A stretch of 64,000 bases of DNA, taken from positions 496,001 through 560,000 of the forward strand of contig NIVC01000095.1 in the NCBI GenBank assembly GCA_002269645.1. The letters are read 5' to 3'. Both the position numbers and the translations under genes were made by a program. This document shows, piece after piece, positions 375 to 47,875 of this stretch. The notes below the pieces were generated by a model that ran no database searches, was not told where the DNA came from, and saw nothing but the letters and a program-made list of their open reading frames with translations. Position 1 is the first letter of the stretch, and the number at the start of each line of letters is the position of its first letter. Source of the DNA: Macrostomum lignano (taxonomy: Eukaryota).

Positions 375-3300
375 ATGGCTTTTAGCTTGCTGTTAAGGAC
401 AACGGCTATTATAATCGGATTTGCATGCTCTGCGGCCCAGTTTAATGAAATTAGAAACGACAAAGTACTGAGCAGGGAACATACTGGCGGCGCTTCGATT
501 GGTATTGATTTTGGCGCCTCGCATATCAGGTAATAATTCGTTTAATTGGTACGCGTATTCATAAGATCATTTGGGACACATTTGACGAACAATTACAAAT
601 TGTAAATAATCAGGCCGCGGAAGCAAATGCCAAATCTCGATGATGCAACCCCCAGCGTAGCAAAAGACGTTTAGCCGGATCGCTCAGTCAAAATTATCCA
701 TGATTTTACACTGAATTACAGTCCAATAGTGGGATGAGACAGAGAAATTGCTTCCGTTTTAAGCTAAATGGCACATAAATGTTGTCTACTAAGTCATGTA
801 GACTTACATGTCACATAATTTAACTCCCTTATTCCCTTATTCCCTTATTTGTTGTCCACTGGACTGAGACGCAGACAGATTGGACTTCCAATGACGATCG
901 ATGTCCATTTTTGACATTCGCTTTTGTTCATCGTGAAAGCTTTTTATCACATCAACGTGACGTCTGTGTGATAGTGATAGTACACAGTGTACAACCATCC
1001 CGATCTCTATGCATGCAATCGCCATTCCAATTTGAATCTCCCGACGTTGTTTCTTACTTCAGCATCGATTGAATATGCGTTTGTTAAATTAACTCAAACT
1101 CACTGCATGATTTCAGAGTTGCCGTATTCCGAAACGGCAAAGCTTCGGTCCTGAAGAACGAGCAGGGTAGCGAAATCACACCCGCCTATGTGGCATTCAC
1201 ACGGGATGGAAAACGGCTCATCGGAGACGAGGCGAAGAGTCAGCTCACCTCGAATCCGGAGAACACGGTGTTCTCTTTATTCCCAATTCTTGGCGGCCAA
1301 AGCTTTGATGAGGAAGAGGTCCAGAATCACACGGAGGTCGTGCCTTACAAAATATTTAGTAGCAACAAGAAAGCCAAAATCGACGTGAAAGTTGGTGACC
1401 GCATTGAGTCATTTTCTACAGAAGAAATTGTCGCCGTGCTGCTCAGCAAGATGAAGGAAATTGCTGAAAAATACCTGAACGAACCGGTCACCAGAGCGGT
1501 AATCAGTTTGGCCAGCTGCGCCACCTATTCCCAACGGAGGGCGATCAAAGATTCTGGTAAAATCTCCGGCTTCCAAGAGGTTCACGTAGTCAATTCCCAC
1601 ATGACCGCTACCCTGGCTTACCTGCTGCTAGTCGAAGTCTTCAGTCCGAGGCGCGTGCTGGTCATTGACGTTGGCGCCAGGTCGCTCAGCGTCGCAGTTT
1701 TATCAGTTGGCAACGGAGCAATCCGAACCCTCGCTCAGGATTGCTCAACTAAAATTGGTGGCGAAATATTCCAGCAGCGAGTCATTCACTACATGGAGAT
1801 GCTCTACGAGAAAAAGAAGGGCAGAGGCTTGGCGGAGCGGCTCCGTAAGAGTGCCAACGCCCAGCAGAAGCTTCGTAGAGAAGTTGAAAAAGCAATTCGA
1901 ACTTTGTCTTTTAGTGAGCTGGCGGATGTTCAGACTGAGTCACTTCTGGGCGAGGACTTCTCTGAGGTTCTGATGCAGTCCCGGTTTGAACAGCTGAATA
2001 TGGATCTGTTCCAAAGCGTGGCAGATCTTGCTGAGACGGTGCTCAACCGAGCAGGCTCGCGAGCCGCAAAACTCGATGACATGTTGCTAGTTGGCGGCTC
2101 CAGTAAAATTCCAATGTTGCGTCAATTCGTGGCAAACGCCATCCTAGCAGTTGGCCAGCCCAGCGACATGATGGATCCAGACACTTCGTCAGTTGTTGGC
2201 GCGGCAATCTGGGCCGGGAGCCTCGCCAACAGAGCATTCGACGACGGCACTATTGGAGCCTTCAAGCCCGGCTTGCTGGCATCAGGAGATTTCGCCCTTG
2301 TCGACAGCACGTCACGCTGCCTGGGCTACTTATCCAAGGGATATTATTTTACTACCGTTATTCCTCGAAATGAGCCGCTGCCAGCCAAGAGGGAAGTGAA
2401 GGTATCGTTGCCGAATATCTACGACGAGGAAGTCAGTAAGGCAACTATACTGGTGTTCGAGGGCGAGCAGCGCGTGGCTGAAATGAAGAACTTCGTTGAT
2501 TCGGTTCAGTTGTACTTTAAGAAGACTCTCTATCCGGCACTTTGGAGTAACTTTACTATCAATCACGAGCACACGATAACGGTTAGTAACCATCATTGAT
2601 TATTCAGATGACTTTCAGCGTTTTAAAGAAATTCTGCTTCTTCACTACTACAAATACTCAAGATATTACATCAAAACGTCTCAGTAGGGTCCTGAAATTC
2701 AAACATTTGCACCCATTAATCCCTAAAAAGTGCGGAAGCCAAAGTGCAGGCGCCGGTAGCTGACCCTCCCCCCCTTCAAACAGGAAGGCCTTTAACCCCG
2801 GCCCATAAAAGTGGCGCAACTTGACATCTCAAAATGGCTTCCCTGGACACCCAAAAGCTATAGTGCATGCTTGGCTACCCCCAGAGTTCTCAAAACTGAC
2901 GTCTCTCATGCAGCCCCTGACGAAATAGGAGACCTTATTTGATATCTCCTGCATGTAAAATACAACCCTTGACACTCAGTTGTGGCGCCCTTAGGCCTTA
3001 AATTGCTGAGTCTATCATAGCTAGACGTCGCTGTACGTAAAATAAGTATTTTTACGTTACATCGACCGATGATAACAACGTTACATGCGTCGGCTGAAAG
3101 TCGGTTTAATGTAAAAGTACATATCTGTCAGTGACGTCGATAGACGTCAGGAACGTTGACGGCGGACGTCGTCGACGTCGGAATGCTGTACAGGTGCATG
3201 TACATGTACATCATATATGCTGCAGTGCCGCCAATTGCAAAACAGTGACGCGGACCTTGAGACTCAAAGGTGCAGTGCTCTTTGACTCGAAAGTACACGG

Positions 3301-3812
3301 CGCCATCTATTTTATAAATGCCACAGATCGAAGCTCATTTTTACAGAAGTTCTGTAAACACTCTGCAGTGTATATTAGAGCGCAACGAAATCGCGTTCAT
3401 TTCATACCGTATTACGTTACACCATCTGCAGGTCTCTCTCCGCGAAATGAAGTCAAACACGATCAACACGGACACTTTTGACCAGCGAATTGACCAGCAG
3501 GAAATAAAACGAATGGCCAACCGGCTGCAGACCTTCGCCGATCGGGATCGATGGGAGGCCAAACGGATTGAAGCGCGCGACGATTTGGAATCGCTGGCCT
3601 ATCGAATGAGGCGGCAAGTTCGGGCAGGGAAGCAGCTGTGGACTGAGGAATCCAGCGGTGGACGAAGCAGCGTTGAAGACTGGACCATGGCTGAGCGGAC
3701 CGCGCAGCGAGTGATCGACTGGCTTGAGGAACACGGAGCTCAGGCTGACGCTGGGGAGTTTGTACTGAAGAGGCGAGAGCTTGCTTTAGCGGGCGTTAAG
3801 GCTGAACTTTAG
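375..3812 (+). CDS. Divergent ER-luminal Hsp70 (BiP/GRP78-like), 3 exons, 666 aa
   Basis: Exons 375-529, 1117-2581, 3432-3812; GT-AG, phases 2 and 0, 2001 nt in total. N-terminal hydrophobic signal peptide (MAFSLLLRTTAIIIGFACSAA). BiP-like segments: GIDFG, ITPAYVAFTRDGKRLIGDEAKSQLTSNPENTVF, LLVGGSSKIP, VIPRNEPLP, VFEGEQ, lid helix RIEARDDLESLAY. C-terminal KAEL is KDEL-like. Confidence 0.88.
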
Positions 3813-31700: not shown

Positions 31701-33022
31701 ACATTGTAGTGCCAAATCAGCACACATTGTAGTGCCAAATCAGCACACATTGTAGTGCCAAATCAGCACACATTGTAGTGCCAAATCAGCACATTGTAGC
31801 GCCAAATAAGCACACATTGTATTGCCAAATCAGCACACATTGTATTGCCAAATCAGCACACATTGCAGTGCCATATAAACACACATTGTAGTGCCAAATC
31901 AGCACACATTGCAGTGCCAAATAAACACACATTGTAGTGCCAAATAAGCACATTGTAGTGCCAAATAAGCACACATTGTATTGCCAAATCAGCACATTGT
32001 AGTGCCAAATCAGCACACATTGTAGTGCCAAATCAGCACACATTGTAGTGCCAAATCAGCACACATTGTAGTGCCAAATCAGCACATTGTAGTGCCAAAT
32101 CAGCACACATTGTAGTGCCAAATCAGCACACATTGTATTGCCAAATAAACACACATTGTAGTGCCAAATAAACACACATTTAGCTCCAAATAAAACACAT
32201 TGTAGAGCCAAATAAACACATTTTAGCGCCAAATACACTATTTATCCATTTCCTCATCTGTTTTTTACCCATCCATCCAGGCCAATAGACATCTTCCCCA
32301 ATGGCCAATTCAATAAGCTGGCCGCTCCAGTGTGGCGTCACACATCGCTAGACACCCTGGCCAGAGACTGCGCCGCCTGCTGTCTAGACTGTCTTCGAGT
32401 TGCTGCTCAAAGCTTCGCCGAACTCGAACAGCACCAGCAGGCATCAAGCAGCACTGATGAAGCCAGCGCCTCTTCAACCAGCGCATTTATTAGTCACGCT
32501 ATGGGTATTAAAAAATCGCACGAAGTCGAACAGATGTCGATAATTTGCGACAGATTAGCGCGCTCTAGAGGCGTTGATTTACTAGTAGATGTTGGCTCTG
32601 GGAAAGGCTACCTGGGCGCTTGTTTGTACCTGGCTCACGGTCAGCGAGTGCTGGAGATTGACGCTAAGCCGGGCAACACGGCTGGGGCTATCAAGCGCCG
32701 CGATAATTTAGAAGAGAAATGGCGATTCCTGCAAAGACGCGCCGAAGGCAACGTTAAACGCCTGACTCCGGAAGAGTATCGCGCCGAACAGGAAGTGTCA
32801 GCCTCTACTGCTACCGGTGATGATGAAGCTGCGTCTTTCTGCGCTTCGATTAGCGCAGTAGTTCGAGACGCTCAACATTTGGCTGATATTGTGGCCGAGA
32901 AGTGCGGAGCTAAGGTTCGAGGAACAGTCTGTTGTACATTTAGGGGTGGCAAGAAGCAGTCATGCCATGTACACACGCTTGCACAGGGTGTACAGCGGCT
33001 TTAGATAGATAGGTAGATAGGT

Positions 33023-39319: not shown

Positions 39320-41095
39320 GGCTCATATTCCAACCCACAGAATCTCCCACATTCCAACCCACAGTGGACCCACATTCCAGCCCACAGAATCTCCCACATT
39401 CCAACCCACAGTGGACCCACATTCCAGCCCACAGAATCTCCCACATTCCAACCCACAGTGGACCCACATTCCAGCCCACAGAATCTCCCACATTCCAACC
39501 CACATAATCTCCCACATTCCAACCCACATAATCTCCCACATTCCAACCCACAGTGGACCCACATTCCAACCCACAGAATCTCCCACATTCCAACCCACTG
39601 AATCTCCCACATTCCAACCCACAGTGGACCCACATTCCAGCCCACAGAATCTCCCACATTCCAACCCACAGAATCTCCCATATTCCAACCCACAGAATCA
39701 ACCACATTCCAACCCACAGAATCTCCCATATTCCAACCCACAGAATCTCCCATATTCCAACCCACAGAATCAACCACATTCCAACCCACATAATCTCCCA
39801 CATTCCAACCCACATAATCTCCCACATTCCAACCCACAGAATCTCCCATATTCCAACCCACAGAATCGCCCATATTCCAACCCACAGAATCAACCACATT
39901 CCAACCCACAGAATCTCCCACATTCCAGCCCACAGAATCTCCCATATTCCAACCCACAGAATCTCCCATATTCCAACCCACAGAATCTCCCATATTCCAA
40001 CCCACAGAATCAACCACATTCCAACCCACATAATCTCCCACATTCCAACCCACATAATCTCCCACATTCCAACCCACAGAATCTCCCATATTCCAACCCA
40101 CAGAATCGCCCATATTCCAACCCACAGAATCAACCACATTCCAACCCACAGAATCTCCCACATTCCAGCCCACAGAATCTCCCATATTCCAACCCACAGA
40201 ATCTCCCATATTCCAACCCACAGAATCTCCCACATTCCAACCCACATAATCTCCCACATTCCAACCCACATAATCTCCCACATTCCAACCCACAGAACCT
40301 CCCACATTCCAACCCACAGAATCTCCCATATTCCAACCCACAGAATCTCCCATATTCCAACCCACAGAATCAACCACATTCCAACCCACAATCTCCCACA
40401 TTCCAACCCACAGAATCTCCCACATCCCAGCCCACAGAATCTTCCATATTCCAACCCACAGAATCTCCCATATTCCAACCCACAGAATCAACCACATTCC
40501 AACCCACAGAATCTCCCACATTCCAACCCACATAATCTCCCACATTCCAACCCACAGAACCTCCCATATTCCAACCCACAGAACCTCCCATATTCCAACC
40601 CACAGAATCTCCCATATTCCAACCCACAGAATCAACCACATTCCAACCCACATAATCTCCCACATTCCAACCCACAGAACCTCCCACATTCCAACCCACA
40701 GAATCTCCCACATTCCAACCCACAGAATCTCCCACATTCCAACCCACATAATCTCCCACATTCCAACCCACAGAATCTCCCACATTCCAACCCACAGAAT
40801 CAACCACATTCCAACCCACAGAATCTCCCACATTCCAACCCACAGAACCTCCCACATTCCAACCCACAGAATCTCCCACATTCCAACCCACAGAATCTCC
40901 CACATTCCAACCCACATAATCTCCCACATTCCAACCCACAGAATCTCCCACATTCCAACCCACATAATCTCCCACATTCCAACCCACAGAATCTCCCACA
41001 TTCCAACCCACAGAATCTCCCACATTCCAACCCACATAATCTCCCACATTCCAACCCACAGAATCTCCCACATTCCAGCCCAACAGAATCATTCA
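39320..41095. repeat. 24-bp minisatellite (cacattccaacccacagaatctcc), ~1.8 kb
   Basis: Tandem array directly upstream of TyrRS. Confidence 0.95.
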
Positions 41096-41175
41096 TTATC
41101 TAATCTAACAGAATCACGCGTATTCCCTTATGGAAACCTGATTATCTATTGCTTGCATGACCAATCCAACACAAC

Positions 41176-42799
41176 ATGACTCAAAAACAGCAACTCATAA
41201 TCCGCAACCTACAAGAAGTAGTAGGCCTAGACAGACTCAAAGCTAAAACAGCCAAACACGAGTTGAGCGTGTACTGGGGCACGGCCACAACCGGTCGGCC
41301 TCATGTTGCCTATTTTGTACCGATGAGTAAGCTGGCCGATTACCTGCTAGCCGGGTGTCACGTGACTGTCCTGTTCGCCGACTTGCACGCCTACCTGGAC
41401 AACATGAAAGCGCCTTGGTCGCTGCTTAATAAACGTACAAATTATTACGAAACTGTGATTAAAGGCATGCTAAAATCGATTGGAGTACCGCTTGATCGAT
41501 TGAAATTTGTTCGCGGTACAGATTTTGAGTTGGGAAAAGAGTACACCAGAGATGTCTATCGTATCGCCGCCGAGGTCACGGTTCACGATGCTAAGAAGGC
41601 CGGCGCAGAGGTGGTTAAACAGGTAGCCAGTCCGTTGATTTCCGGCCTCCTTTATCCTTGTCTGCAGGCTCTTGACGAGCAGTACCTTGGAGTTGATGCT
41701 CAATTTGGCGGCGTAGATCAAAGAAAAATATTCATGCTAGCTGAGAAGTATCTGGTTAATTTAGGCTACTCTAAACGAATCCACCTGATGAATCCAATGA
41801 TTCCCGGCCTGACTGGCGGTAAGATGTCCGCCTCTGAGGCCGATTCAAAGATTGACTTGCTAGACTCGGCTGAGTCTGTTAGCGCTAAAGTTGCCGGCGC
41901 TCAATGCTCTCCCGGAGCCGCCGAAGGCAACGGAGTTCTCAGCTTCCTACAGTACGTTGTCTTCCCGTTGCTAGGCGGCACCGATGGCCTAGCGATTGGT
42001 TCGTCGAAGAAACGTTACGCCGAATTCCAACAGGTGTCTGAAGATTTCGCGTCGGGTAGTTTAACTGCCGAAGATTTGAAAGGCTGCGTTGCTGACAGTC
42101 TGAACCGGTTGCTGGGTCCCGTTAGAAAAGAATTCGAAGAATCTTCGGAGCTTCAACAGCTCCTGGTGGATGCCTATCCGAAGGATCAACCAGCTAAGAG
42201 CAGCAGCGGTGGAGATGCCGGCGATGTAGCCGACCGTCTGCCTGGAATTCAACTGGCCACCATCGACGCCAAACTGATTGAATCGCTAAGTCGGTTTGCT
42301 ACTCAGTTTGGTTCTCAAGATTCTGTGCCAGTCAAATCTGGTTCATCACCCAGGTTGCTATGGACAATTAGACCTTGCGGTCCGATGCACCTGGGACACC
42401 TGGTGCCGCTGCTTGGCGCCCTGTCTATGGCCAAGGCTGGCTGGAGGGTCACCTTGTTAGTGTCCGAGATGCAGGCTTTCTTAGATAGGAAGCGAGCTCC
42501 AATTGACTCGCTGGAAGTTAGAGGTTCGACAGTTAAAGATGTGCTAAGTCGCTTGGCAACTGGTCTCCTAGGCGACACAGCTGCCGCTGCCGTCACCGTG
42601 ACTTCTGGCCTAGAAGAGTTGAGCTATAACAAAGACTACGTGCTGGATATGTATCGTCTGGTGTCTTTAGTTACTGTTGACGAGGTGAGGAGCAGTTAGA
42701 TAAAATGCAACAGTCTTAAAATAGACAGACCGTAGAAAAAAAGGTTTCTTTGATTGTCACCTATCTACCTGTCAGTGCCTGTGTGTCTTTCTGTCTATC

Positions 42800-42894
<95 letters not shown>

Positions 42895-43045
42895 GTATCT
42901 ATTTATCTATCTATCAATCTATTTATCTATCTATCTATCTTTTATATCTATCTATCTATCTATGTATCTATCTATGTATCTATTTATCTATCTATCAATC
43001 TATTTATCTATCTATCTATCTTTTATATCTATCTATCTATCTATG

Positions 43046-43084
<39 letters not shown>

Positions 43085-43092
43085 TTATCTAT

Positions 43093-43164
<72 letters not shown>

Positions 43165-43203
43165 CTGTCTATCTATCTATCTATCTATGTATCTATCTAT
43201 CTG

Positions 43204-43261
<58 letters not shown>

Positions 43262-45536
43262 CATCTGTCTATCTATTAAAGAAATTATTCAAGACGAAAT
43301 AAAAGAGAAACAAATACGATGAAATGCCTGCACAAACAATATTATGAGCACACTCTACTCCGCCCCTTCGCCCAGGCAATGCAAGCCGGCTCTGGTGTCC
43401 TCTCTCACGGCGAGCACCCGCCACTCTCCCACCTGCTGTGGCCCTGCCTGTCCGCTCTGGACGCCCACCACTGCCGGGCCTCCGTCCGCCTTTGCGGCCA
43501 AGACGAGTCCAGCTTGTCCGAGTTCTCCTCTCTCGCTCTTAATTGTCTGGGCTACCCGGCAACTCCTAGCTTTGCTCATGCTCAACTGCCAGGCCTCACT
43601 GGCCAGTCCAGCATGAGCTTGTCTGATCCTGATAGCGCCATCTTAGCTTTGGAGTCGGCTGCCAGTTTGAAAAAGAAAGTAAAAAAAATGTTCTGCGAGC
43701 CTGGCAATGTTGATCGGTGCCCGCCGTTGGACTGCCTGCGGCTGCTGTTGCTTCCGTTTAAACGACTCAGTGGCTCAGAAGGTGACAGCATCCGGGTGTC
43801 TCGGTCTGCTGAACTCGGTGGCGACCTGGTGTTTGCCAGCTTCGATGAGTTGAAGTCTGCGTTTGTTGATAAGGTGACAAATCTTTGCCGTCTGGTAGTG
43901 CTTCTGTTAGATTCGGATAAGGCAGTTAGAGATGCAGGGAGAGGCTGTTAGAGATGCAGGGAGAGGCTGTTAGAGATGCAGGGAGAGGCTGTTAGAGACG
44001 CAGAGAAGCAGTTAGAGACGCAGGGAAAGGCAGTTAGAAATGCAGGGAGAGGCTGTAAGAGACGCAGGGAGAGGCTGTTAGAGACGCAGGGAGAGGCTGT
44101 TAGAGACGCAGGGAGAGGCAGTTAGAGATACAGGGAGAAGCTGTTAGAGACGCAGGGAGAGGCTGTTAGAGACGCAGGGAGAGGCAGTTAGAGATACAGG
44201 GAGAGGCTGTTAGAGACGCAGGAAGAGGCAGTTGGATTTGGTTAATCTTGTACATTTCTACATTTTCAACCCCTTGCCTTCACAACTGCCAGTCTCTGCA
44301 CCCCGGCGACCTGAAAGCCCACGTGGAGTCTGGCCTGCTGGAGATGCAGAACCGTCTGCGAGAGTTGATTGGCCCCGAGCTGACTAAAAAACTGGACGGC
44401 GCATTTGCTGCGCCTGATAAGAGTGAGTTTATATTTTTCAACTATTAAATACCTACTTGTTTATGGCTACTGTCAGTAGTAGCTTTTCTAGCTTTGGAGA
44501 TCGAAAAATCTGGATTTTTTGGTATGCCATTGAATTGGCCCCAAAATTGAGCGTCAGATAGCGCCAAAATAAATGTCAGAAGTGAGTGTCAGATAGCGCC
44601 AAAAATGAGTCAGTTGGCGCCAAAAATGAGTTTCAGTTGGCGCCTAAAGTAAGTGTCAGATAGCGCCGAAAATAGGTGTCAGATAGCGCCAAAAGTGTGA
44701 GCGCCAAATAGCGTCAAAAATGAGTGTCAGATCGTGCCGAAAATAGATGTCAGATAGCGCCGAAAATAGGTGTCAGATAGCGCCAAAACTAAGTCTCAGT
44801 TGGCGCCAAAAATGAGTGTCAGATAGCGCCAAAAATAAGTGTCAGATAGCGCCAAAATTGAGTGTCAGATAGCGCCAAAATTGAGTGTCAGATAGCGCCA
44901 AAATTGAGTGTCAGTTGGCGCCAAAGCTGAGTGTCAGATAGCGCCAAAAATTCTGTCGTCAAATCCATCCAAACCCTCACCCCCTCCAACCTCTCCCCCG
45001 CTGCAGAGTCAGCCGGTGCAGCAGCAGACGAGCTGAACCCTCACCGTCTGGACATCCGGGTTGGCCGCATCCTCGACGTCTCGGTCCACCCAGACGCCGA
45101 CCAGCTGTACGTTGAGTCGGTGGATCTGGGCGAGGACCGGCCTCGGACTGTAGTGTCGGGCCTGGTGAAGTACCTGCCGGCTGACCAGTTGCGCAATCAG
45201 CTGTTCCTGTTCCTCTGCAATTTGAAGCCGGCTAAAATGCGCGGCATCGAGTCCAGCGCCATGCTGCTGTGCGCCAGCGCCACCGACGGCGCCACTGTTG
45301 AGCCGCTGAACCCGCCGGAAGGTTCGAATCCGGGCGACCGAGTCGGATTCGAAGGAGTTGCTGAGATCCCATTGGGCCCGGACAAGGAGCTCAATCCCAA
45401 GAAGAAAGTCTGGGAGAAGATTGCCGAACATTTGCGCGTTAACGAGGACGGCATTGCGGTTTGGCGCCAATTTGAAATGCGAACGGAACGGGGCATTGTG
45501 GTGGCGCCAAGTCTCAGCTCAGCGCCGGTGAAATAA
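41176..45536 (+). CDS. YARS1: Cytosolic tyrosyl-tRNA synthetase, double-length (two TyrRS modules plus EMAP-II C-domain), 4 exons, 888 aa
   Basis: Exons 41176-42684, 43376-43873, 44293-44422, 45007-45536 (2667 nt; phases 0, 0, 1). Motifs [53 protein letters not shown]; second module MFCEPGN, LHPGDLK; [50 protein letters not shown]. The start is slightly uncertain because an in-frame acceptor at 41190 is possible. Confidence 0.95.
42790..43275. repeat. (TCTA)n microsatellite in TyrRS intron 1
   Basis: Direct observation. Confidence 0.95.
43915..44230. repeat. 22-bp minisatellite (gttagagacgcagggagaggct) in TyrRS intron 2
   Basis: Direct observation. Confidence 0.9.
44545..44950. repeat. ~23-bp minisatellite (gtgtcagatagcgccaaaaatga) in TyrRS intron 3
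   Basis: Direct observation. Confidence 0.9.
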
Positions 45537-45629: not shown

Positions 45630-46080
45630 ACTGTGTTCCCCTCTCCCCCGATATGTTTTCCCCCTTCCCCCCGTTGTGTTTTCCCCTCTACCCCCCGCTG
45701 TTTTCCCCTCTGCCCCCAGCTGTGTTTTCCCTCTGCCCCCCGCTGTGTTTCCCCTCTGCCCCCCGCTGTGTTTCCCCTCTGCCCCCCGCTGTGTTTTCCC
45801 CTCTACCCCCGCTGTGTTTTCCCCTCTACCCCCCGCTGTTTTCCCCTCTGCCCCCAGCTGTGTTTTCCCTCTGCCCCCCGCTGTGTTTCCCCTCTGCCCC
45901 CCGCTGTGTTTTCCCCTCTGCCCCCCGCTGTGTTTCCCCTCTGTTCCCCGCTGTGTTTTCCCCTCTGCCCCCCGCTGTGTTTCCCCTCTGCCCCCGCTGT
46001 GTTTTCCCCTCTGCCCCCCGCTGTGTTTTCCCCTCTGCCCCCCGCTGTGTTTTCCCTCTCCCCGCTGTGTTTTCCCCTCT
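45630..46080. repeat. ~23-bp C-rich minisatellite (ccctctgccccccgctgtgtttt) 3' of TyrRS
   Basis: Direct observation. Confidence 0.9.
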
Positions 46081-46727: not shown

Positions 46728-47875
46728 ACAGATCCTCAGTTGCTGGGCCAGCCTCCCAGATCCTCAGTTGCTGGGCAAGCCTCCCAGATCCTCAGTTGCT
46801 GGGCCAGCCTCCCAGATCCTCAGTTGCTGGGCCAGCCTCCCAGATCCTCAGTTGCTGGGCCAGCCTCCCAGATCCCCAGTTGCTGGGCCAGCCTCCCAGA
46901 GTGTCAGTTGCTGGGCCAGCCTCCCAGACCCTCAGTTGCTGGGCCAGCCTCCCAGATCCTCAGTTGCTGGGCCAGCCTCCCAGATCCTCAGTTGCTGGGC
47001 CAGCCTCCCAGATCCTCAGTTGCTGGGCCAGCCTCCCAGATCCTCAGTTGCTGGGCAACCAGGCTCCCAGATCCTCAGTTGCTGGGCCAGCCTCCCAGAT
47101 CCTCAGTTGCTTGGCCAGCCACCCAGAGTGTCAGTTGCTGGGCCAGCCTCCCAGATCCTCTGTTGCTGGGCCAGCCTCCCAGATCCTCAGTTGCTGGGCC
47201 AGCCTCTCAGATCCTCAGTTGCTGGGCCAGCCTCCCAGATCCTCAGTTGCTGGGCCAGCCTCTCAGATCCTCAGTTGCTGGGCCAGCCTCCCAGATCCTC
47301 AGTTGCTGGGCCAGCCTCCCAGATCCTCAGTTGCTGGGCCAGCCTCCCAGATCCTCAGTTGCTGGGCCAGCCTCCCAGATCCTCAGTTGCTGGGCCAGCC
47401 TCCCAGATCCTCAGTTGCTGGGCAACCAGGCTCCCAGATCCTCAGTTGCTGGGCCAGCCTCCCAGATCCTCAGTTGCTTGGCCAGCCACCCAGAGTGTCA
47501 GTTGCTGGGCCAGCCTCCCAGATCCTCAGTTGCTGGGCCAGCCTCCCAGATCCTCAGTTGCTGGGCCAGCCTCTCAGATCCTCAGTTGCTGGGCCAGCCT
47601 CCCAGATCCTCAGTTGCTGGGCCAGCCTCCCAGTTCCTCAGTTGCTGGGCAACCAGGCTCCCAGATCCTCAGTTGCTGGGCCAGCCTCCCAGATCCTCAG
47701 TTGCTTGGCCAGCCACCCAGAGTGTCAGTTGCTGGGCCAGCCTCCCAGATCCTCAGTTGCTGGGCCAGCCTCCCAGATCCTCAGTTGCTGGGCCAGCCTC
47801 TCAGATCCTCAGTTGCTGGGCCAGCCTCCCAGATCCTCAGTTGCTGGGCCAGCCTCCCAGATCCTCAGTTGCTGT
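46728..47875 (+). repeat. 28-bp minisatellite (ctcagttgctgggccagcctcccagatc), array A
   Basis: ~40 copies with a periodic 'ggcaaccagg' variant. Confidence 0.95.

Follow-up and report, generated by a model that had tools for sequence, protein, structure and literature searches.

A double-length tyrosyl-tRNA synthetase of the flatworm Macrostomum lignano with complementary motif loss in two tandem modules and a predicted pseudo-dimeric fold

A 64,000-nucleotide stretch of the Macrostomum lignano genome (line DV1, assembly GCA_002269645.1, Mlig_3_7, contig NIVC01000095.1, positions 496,001 to 560,000 of the forward strand; hereafter the window, in whose numbering all coordinates are given, on the + strand unless stated otherwise) carries at 41176–45536 a gene for tyrosyl-tRNA synthetase (TyrRS) that encodes two tandem TyrRS modules followed by an EMAP-II-like domain on a single chain. 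The first module keeps the catalytic motifs and has lost the anticodon motifs, the second keeps the anticodon motifs and has lost most of the catalytic ones, and the same architecture is found in parasitic flatworms. TyrRS is an obligate dimer, and one tRNA straddles both subunits. We consider it probable, at roughly 0.85, that the M. lignano protein is the YARS1 orthologue and that it became a single-chain pseudo-dimer, whose modules cooperate on one tRNA, when the core of an animal-type TyrRS was long ago duplicated in tandem and in frame. In such an enzyme module 1 would activate tyrosine and transfer it to the acceptor end of tRNA-Tyr, and module 2 would fold back on module 1 via the conserved dimer interface of connective peptide 1 (CP1), while its helical C-terminal domain (KKKxKK..CEPGN, GGD, HPGD) would read the anticodon of the same tRNA, which would straddle the two modules as it does the two subunits of ordinary TyrRS. 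The single C-terminal EMAP-II-like domain would add general, non-specific tRNA affinity, and each polypeptide, of ~98 kDa, would have a single active site and a single tRNA site. Catalysis by module 1 only, tRNA binding across the modules and a monomeric state are suggested by motif retention, by a predicted structure and by analogy with the trypanosomatid enzymes.

The preliminary description of this DNA had proposed two TyrRS modules and an EMAP-II domain on one chain, and domain searches agree with it. The Pfam domain tRNA-synt_1b (PF00579) was matched twice (scanned alone, module 1 gave E 4e-56 and module 2 gave 6e-23), and tRNA_bind (PF01588) once, at residues 729–823 (E 8e-28). Module 1, which looks catalytically competent, comprises residues 1–338 (41176–42189); it is followed by a linker of residues ~339–388 (42190–42339) that has no Pfam match and is predicted to be mostly disordered (predicted local distance difference test score, pLDDT, below 50 at model residues 342–393), and by module 2, residues ~389–712 (42340–44422). 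Module 2 aligns to TyrRS not only through PF00579 but also in a search of solved structures (human TyrRS, E 4e-47), and tblastn of the protein against the window matched it to the DNA of module 1 with 28.5% identity (E 2e-28). The C-terminal domain matches the C-domain of human TyrRS (1ntg, E 2e-48) and EMAP-II (1euj, E 8e-46). The protein has the features of class Ic archaeal/eukaryotic TyrRS (the PF00579 matches, with HxAY, KMSxS and the tyrosine-pocket residues in module 1) and, by PF01588 and 1ntg, those of a metazoan TyrRS with an EMAP-II-like C-domain.

Every module was aligned to a profile of canonical animal TyrRS cores, and the motifs quoted for both modules in the preliminary description were all found in place. 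Module 1 is canonical in the HIGH region, the tyrosine pocket and GGKMSAS; it carries VYWG (41269–41280), the HIGH-type signature HVAY (41302–41313), YPCLQALD (41653–41676), GGVDQR (41707–41724) and the KMSKS-type signature KMSAS (41821–41835). In its anticodon domain VKKKLKKAFCEPGN is replaced (the KKKxKK..CEPGN-type motif, 41881–41919), the (F/W)GGD element is gone, and LTAEDLK (42061–42081) stands in place of xHPGDLK. Module 2 reads LLWT (42355–42366), WPCLSALD (43439–43462), GQDE (43496–43507) and SSMSLS (43607–43624) at its catalytic motifs. The KMSKS lysine is a serine, GVDQRK has become GQDESS, and the equivalents of the tyrosine-binding residues Tyr39, Tyr166, Gln170 and Gln188 are Leu, Trp, Ser and Arg. 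Four of the five residues of the Tyr pocket have thus changed, and the counterpart of human D173 is still an Asp. The anticodon motifs of module 2, KKKxKK..CEPGN (43670–43708), GGD and LHPGDLK (44296–44316), are intact. The view of module 2 as a mirror image of module 1 holds for the KMSKS lysine, the tyrosine pocket and the anticodon motifs, but a HIGH-like signature retained inside the otherwise degenerate site, MHLGH (42385–42399), had been overlooked. Reciprocity was counted on residues invariant in 8 canonical animal TyrRS. Module 1 keeps 133/146 of them in the catalytic domain versus 24/39 in the anticodon domain (Fisher p 3e-5), and module 2 keeps 51/146 versus 21/39 (p 0.04). The motifs and counts support a complementary division of labour between the two modules.

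These losses bear on the possibility that both modules are catalytically active in a two-site enzyme, as proposed for the plant double TyrRS. Module 2 does retain H-L-G-H, a folded Rossmann domain (pLDDT ~90) and the D173-equivalent Asp, and in another fusion protein, P0003, two intact sites do occur together. However, the lysine and tyrosine-pocket replacements and the loss of all but 51 of the 146 invariant catalytic-domain residues argue against a second active site, as does the catalytic domain of the corresponding module in Neodermata, the centre of which is no longer alignable; moreover, a second tRNA site would depend on anticodon motifs in module 1, which are missing there. A two-site enzyme is therefore very improbable.

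The predicted structure is consistent with a pseudo-dimer. The AlphaFold2 (AF2) model, run on an alignment of 21 double-length proteins, has a mean pLDDT of 81.8 and a predicted template modelling score (pTM) of 0.70; both modules and the EMAP-II-like domain fold confidently, and disorder is confined to the KMSAS loop and to two linkers, the one between the modules (~50 residues) and the one before EMAP-II. Foldseek aligned module 1 with human mini-TyrRS at a template modelling (TM) score of 0.94, a root-mean-square deviation of 1.8 Å and 59% identity. The two-module body aligned with the Leishmania pseudo-dimers 5usf, 3p0j, 3p0h and 3p0i over ~750 columns with target-normalised TM scores of 0.78–0.83, and since the target has ~680 residues, scores of this size indicate that the modules are mutually oriented in the model as in the crystal pseudo-dimer. 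The AlphaFold test for an intramolecular dimer interface suggested in the preliminary description thus gave a fold of the Leishmania type, in which the two modules are predicted to contact one another as subunits do in a TyrRS dimer. The better-kept segments of the module 2 catalytic domain include the CP1 stretch YxLDxYRL / LSxLLxPxLxALD, and the CP1 segments form the dimer interface in TyrRS.

A second genomic copy of the gene (L005, on NIVC01000096.1) has all four exons without insertions or deletions and with identical splice sites, and differs in intron lengths. The ratio of nonsynonymous to synonymous divergence (dN/dS, Nei-Gojobori) between the two copies is 0.04 for module 1, 0.25 for module 2 and 0 for the EMAP-II region. 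The 21 changes in module 2 comprise 12 synonymous and 9 nonsynonymous ones, a proportion that departs from neutrality (binomial p 0.002). Module 2 is more relaxed than module 1, yet it is clearly constrained by purifying selection. The assembly contains at least two to three near-identical TyrRS copies (L005; proteins P0271–P0274) with 98–99.6% exon nucleotide identity, which is in line with a recent genome duplication of the DV1 line.

The higher dN/dS of module 2 (0.25 versus 0.04) could also be taken to mean that this module is no partner in aminoacylation, but a decaying relic or a domain with another role (regulation, tRNA sequestration or sensing of a ligand by HLGH), and that chains pair through module 1 as a dimer of pseudo-dimers. 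The conserved HLGH would fit such a role, and a monomeric state is predicted from the sequence and the model. Nevertheless, module 1 has lost exactly those anticodon motifs that module 2 keeps, and this holds in every flatworm and other animal fusion, the mites with reversed module order included; complementary loss across fusions would be expected only if the modules cooperate on one tRNA. Purifying selection on module 2 (p 0.002) also argues against a relic, and in the model module 2 occupies the canonical dimerisation surface of module 1, where it would block a module 1–module 1 dimer. We regard a non-partner module 2 as improbable, if somewhat less so than the two-site enzyme.

Over 10.4 kb the window matches contig NIVC01000095.1 at 100% identity. 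Exons joined from the window DNA give a gene of four exons with 2667 nt in frame, 888 codons and a TAA stop, and all three introns are bounded by GT..AG. Exon 1 (41176–42684, residues 1–503) includes the ATG, the whole of module 1, the linker between the modules and some 115 residues at the start of module 2, and is followed by GT at 42685; an in-frame TGA at 41158–41160 lies 18 nt upstream of the ATG. Exon 2 (43376–43873) encodes residues 504–669 and has identical junctions in L005, exon 3 (44293–44422) encodes residues 670–712 plus one nucleotide and begins at SLHPGDLK, and exon 4 (45007–45536) encodes a short linker and the EMAP-II-like tRNA-binding domain (residues ~721–888) and ends with the stop codon. 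Intron 1 (42685–43375) consists mostly of a (TCTA)n microsatellite, intron 2 (43874–44292) mostly of a 22-nt tandem array and intron 3 (44423–45006) mostly of a 23-nt tandem array. The translation is identical to GenBank PAA91082.1 (BOX15_Mlig021276g1) apart from four added residues of translated 5' untranslated region in the latter. An independently made model, UniProt A0A1I8ILR9, also has 888 residues and the same architecture; it represents a near-identical copy in which a few residues differ. The GenBank annotation of the assembly was made from RNA-seq data by StringTie/TACO genome-guided assembly followed by TransDecoder (PMC5730564), so that the exon junctions have transcript support. 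The annotated coding sequence covers all four exons, as the four-exon mRNA of the preliminary description does, and does not end after module 1.

One could envisage that two neighbouring TyrRS genes, or a gene and a pseudogene, were joined by an annotation or assembly artefact. Another automatic model at the locus (P0275) is clearly over-fused with an upstream methyltransferase gene, and a 'triple' TyrRS of Gigantopelta, with near-identical modules, looks like a joining artefact. In M. lignano, however, the module 1–module 2 junction lies inside a single unbroken open reading frame (ORF; 41176–42699) that extends from module 1 across the linker and ~115 residues into module 2, so that the fusion of the modules is independent of splicing. 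The modules are only 28% identical, which speaks against a collapsed recent repeat; the second genomic copy preserves this structure unbroken, and it recurs in many flatworm genomes; the GenBank coding sequence derives from RNA-seq assemblies; and ~3-kb contigs from other taxa, seemingly assembled transcripts, carry unbroken 2.7-kb ORFs of the same architecture. An artefact of joining is the least probable of the alternatives, to the point of being almost negligible.

Both modules are far closer to the human and yeast enzymes than to that of Leishmania. Against solved structures, module 1 matched human TyrRS (1n3l) with E 1e-132 and Leishmania TyrRS with 8e-25, and module 2 matched human TyrRS with the value given above, the yeast enzyme with 1e-41 and Leishmania TyrRS with 2e-9. 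In a neighbour-joining (NJ) tree the animal modules fell with other animal or opisthokont-type TyrRS, far from the plant-type double enzyme, and the halves grouped with neither plant nor trypanosomatid enzymes. The E-values and the tree identify the fusion as an internal duplication of an animal-type gene and thus as convergence; horizontal gene transfer from trypanosomatids or plants was rejected on the same grounds. The independent internal duplication proposed in the preliminary description stands as far as independence from trypanosomatids is concerned, but it is not peculiar to this lineage, since Neodermata share the fusion.

The sequence features of a Leishmania-type pseudo-dimer are all present: one reading frame, catalytic signatures in one module (with HLGH as a caveat) and anticodon elements in the other. 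In Leishmania and T. brucei catalysis belongs to the N half and anticodon reading to the C half, neither of which is dispensable (PMC8319005). Like the M. lignano protein, the trypanosomatid double TyrRS (L. major 3P0H/3P0I/3P0J, L. donovani 5USF and T. brucei) have two tandem modules per chain, the N module having intact class I catalytic motifs but a defect in its anticodon domain, and the C module recognising the anticodon but lacking KMSKS. They form an intramolecular asymmetric pseudo-dimer (PMC8319005), a likeness that for M. lignano comes from the AF2 model. The differences are also clear. Identity is just ~19% over the Foldseek alignment, the Leishmania enzyme lacks the EMAP-II domain of the M. 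lignano protein, its N-module anticodon defect is a reported 6-residue deletion whereas that of M. lignano module 1 is a motif substitution, and, unlike Leishmania, M. lignano keeps H-L-G-H in the degenerate module. Because each module is closer to human and yeast TyrRS, the comparison supports convergence with the Leishmania pseudo-dimer and not shared descent of the fusion.

Human YARS1 (1N3L/1Q11 and 1NTG) shares the HxAY and KMSxS signatures and the EMAP-II-like C-domain with the M. lignano protein, but forms a homodimer in which each chain has one module, a complete anticodon domain and an EMAP-II of its own. In M. lignano a diverged second module is placed between the core and EMAP-II, and the anticodon motifs of module 1 are gone. 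The plant double TyrRS (Arabidopsis At1g28350 type; P0172) also has two tandem modules on one chain, but these have a different TyrRS-type backbone (P..GxMHIAQ, KMSKS) with HIGH and KMSKS in both halves; M. lignano module 2, without the KMSKS lysine and the tyrosine pocket, does not fit this type with two active halves.

With the Trichobilharzia protein as seed, a search found TyrRS of the same architecture, ~870–1120 residues long, in at least 15 species of trematodes (Schistosoma, 10 species, Heterobilharzia, Dicrocoelium, Opisthorchis, Calicophoron, Fasciola and Paragonimus), cestodes (Spirometra, Taenia, Echinococcus, Hymenolepis, Mesocestoides and Anoplocephala) and one monogenean (Cichlidogyrus). 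This search and an exhaustive HMMER scan superseded a word-indexed search with module 2 only, which had returned two ordinary single-module TyrRS. Neodermata share with M. lignano the order N-catalytic, C-anticodon, EMAP-II, and most of them share the module 2 signature xLWxxxPxGxxHLGH as well as the motifs KRRxK..FCxPxN, GGP/GGD and HPGDLK; in S. curassoni and Dicrocoelium a pattern scan gave no match to HPGDLK. Module C of Neodermata is far more eroded than module 2 of M. lignano, with large insertions and, as noted, an unalignable domain centre; the M. lignano module is the least eroded, scoring 172 bits against the core profile, and the neodermatan ones score ~100 bits in two fragments. 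The N and C modules of M. lignano grouped in the NJ tree with the N and C modules of Neodermata, respectively (73% and 66% bootstrap), and this pairing implies that the duplication most likely predates the Macrostomorpha–Neodermata split. The fusion is probably ancestral to rhabditophoran flatworms.

The notion that the fusion is restricted to the lineage of M. lignano is refuted by its presence in trematodes, cestodes and a monogenean, and analogous fusions occur in Malacostraca and in spider and other acariform mites. The malacostracan proteins (crayfish, lobster, shrimps, crabs, an amphipod and an isopod; P0008–P0020) have the same polarity as that of M. lignano and an EMAP-II domain, but lack HLGH and possess an extra N-terminal extension. 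The first ~90 malacostracan residues weakly resemble a GST-C-like Arc1p_N/eEF1B-type domain (PF21972, E 7.5e-4, below threshold), and the extension may be a handle for a multi-synthetase complex. The mite double TyrRS (Tetranychus P0021 and Panonychus P0023; also P0022, P0126 and P0302–P0348) have reversed polarity and no EMAP-II. HIGH, KMSKS and the tyrosine pocket are lost from their N module, which keeps KKK..CxPGN, GGP and HPxD, and their C module is catalytic with degenerate anticodon motifs. Many proteins of ~675–700 residues from environmental assemblies resemble the mite double TyrRS. In P0003 both catalytic sites are intact and the N-module anticodon motifs are already lost, and in P0004/5 HIGH and KMSKS of module C are lost and the tyrosine pocket is largely kept. 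In the fusions compared, the module with catalytic motifs had lost all three anticodon motifs, and vice versa. Gigantopelta aegis 'TyrRS 2' (P0002, 1151 residues) was rejected as a further case; it has three near-identical modules, one of them truncated, and modules so alike point either to an error of assembly or annotation or to a tandem array of very recent origin. Outside the species, module 2 of M. lignano has its closest relative in P0123 (E 2e-75). Its gene, at 1001–3322 of a 44.8-kb contig (L004, Logan ERR3675767), is intron-less with 773 codons, lacks EMAP-II, and sits between topoisomerase III and homeobox genes in a compact genome.

The same searches found single-module TyrRS in molluscs, an annelid, insects, a copepod and vertebrates, which makes several independent animal origins parsimonious. 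The differences among the fusions of flatworms, Malacostraca and mites in polarity, erosion, HLGH, N-terminal extension and EMAP-II also suggest that they arose separately. Pairwise identities place each degenerate module closest to canonical single-module enzymes. In the NJ tree the fast-evolving degenerate modules clustered with 20–70% support, mixing N- and C-position modules and a probably non-animal group; we read this as long-branch attraction, and the tree, like the pairwise identities, is silent on single versus multiple animal origins. Within animals the fusion probably arose more than once and in both polarities.

Several points weigh against a pseudo-dimer in which the modules share one tRNA. 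The AF2 alignment is shallow (21 sequences), and TyrRS dimers were in the AF2 training set. Animal double-length TyrRS are known from sequences and predicted models alone. Transcript support for the gene is an RNA-seq-derived annotation and not direct transcript contigs, and for another TyrRS copy a 511-residue product with intron 1 retained, ending in ...TVDEVRS, is annotated. Flatworms may also have a separate canonical YARS1. The anticodon domains of the two modules are alike in identity to canonical enzymes (40% for module 1, 38% for module 2), so that the anticodon argument rests on specific motifs. The anticodon decay of module 1 put forward in the preliminary description is real for the motifs named, but it is focal (KKKxKK..CEPGN, GGD, HPGD) and not global, overall identity being about the same in both modules and the domain still being predicted to fold. 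The RNA contacts of these motifs are assumed from the M. jannaschii and yeast complexes; in the M. jannaschii TyrRS–tRNA complex (1J1U), G34 is reportedly contacted by the His and Asp of HPxD and by the aromatic residue before GGD.

A further such point is the survival in module 2 of H-L-G-H and of the QALD-motif Asp, which makes binding of a nucleotide or another ligand in the 'dead' site possible. H-L-G-H is the textbook class I HIGH, at a position where active eukaryotic TyrRS has H-V/I-A-Y. Among the flatworms examined, the monogenean, the trematodes and most cestodes have a conserved (P/L)HLGH; a pattern scan did not find HLGH in Hymenolepis or Anoplocephala. HLGH occurs at the same position in P0101, P0125, P0276–P0294, P0123 and P0303, and similar motifs are present in other fusion proteins (PHIGH in P0127, FHLGF in P0130). 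HLGH is possibly a retained nucleotide or ligand pocket.

The double-length pseudo-dimeric TyrRS of Leishmania was reportedly treated in Larson 2011, where a passing mention of animal enzymes is possible; within that limit, we found no description of a double-length or pseudo-dimeric TyrRS for this lineage or for any animal in the searchable full-text literature, which agrees with the preliminary description. Double-length TyrRS have been described for trypanosomatids (Kaser 2018) and plants (Duchene 2005, At1g28350). Reviews of aminoacyl-tRNA synthetase duplication, synthetase architectures and parasite synthetase drug targets, and a survey of Schistosoma and Loa synthetases, do not mention an animal double TyrRS. 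The M. lignano protein is already in databases under a generic name and its architecture is apparently undescribed; double TyrRS of ~900–1100 residues are now labelled merely 'tyrosine--tRNA ligase, cytoplasmic'.

The transition from a homodimer working one site at a time to a fused heterodimer by complementary loss has been reached independently in trypanosomatids and animals. The fusions form a replicate series, from P0003 with both sites intact through the intermediate P0004/5 and the further advanced M. lignano to the heavily eroded Neodermata, which is usable for studying the order and irreversibility of subfunctionalisation. M. lignano offers a free-living, transgenic-tractable model with the least-eroded version of the flatworm fusion. 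If the pseudo-dimer is real, the essential TyrRS of schistosomes, liver flukes and tapeworms is architecturally unlike the host homodimer, which is of interest for drug targeting. The main interest lies less in this single gene than in the recurrent convergence in both polarities in animals and the presence of the fusion in all major parasitic flatworms. We tentatively extend this to a broader proposal, to which we give somewhat less than an even chance: that half-of-the-sites asymmetry has been hard-wired by fusion several times in animals (in all sampled schistosomes, flukes and tapeworms, in Malacostraca and, in reversed order, in acariform mites), a recurrence apparently not described before; that the flatworm fusion is the only cytosolic TyrRS and a host-distinct essential target; and that the 'dead' H-L-G-H pocket binds a nucleotide or ligand for regulation or structure.

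The TyrRS coding exons are islands within satellite-like DNA. Tandem arrays fill most of the three introns (42786–43276, 43920–44233 and 44583–44951), the gene is adjoined at its 5' end by a 24-mer array of 74 copies, and arrays of 23/46/70-mers and 28-mers lie beyond the stop codon; the flanking arrays span 39327–41090, 45631–46080 and 46729–47494. A gene with a Methyltransf_32 domain lies upstream on the same strand (32330–33004), and in UniProt A0A1I8IVH2 (P0275, 1154 residues) the upstream methyltransferase is joined in frame to TyrRS. M. lignano is known to have polycistronic, trans-spliced transcription, and the joined model may reflect either over-fusion by the annotation or such a transcription unit at this locus. 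Near the start of the window there is an Hsp70-family ORF (1190–2599; PF00012, E 7e-76), and downstream of TyrRS, from 48391 on the opposite (−) strand, a gene with a weak cNMP-binding match.

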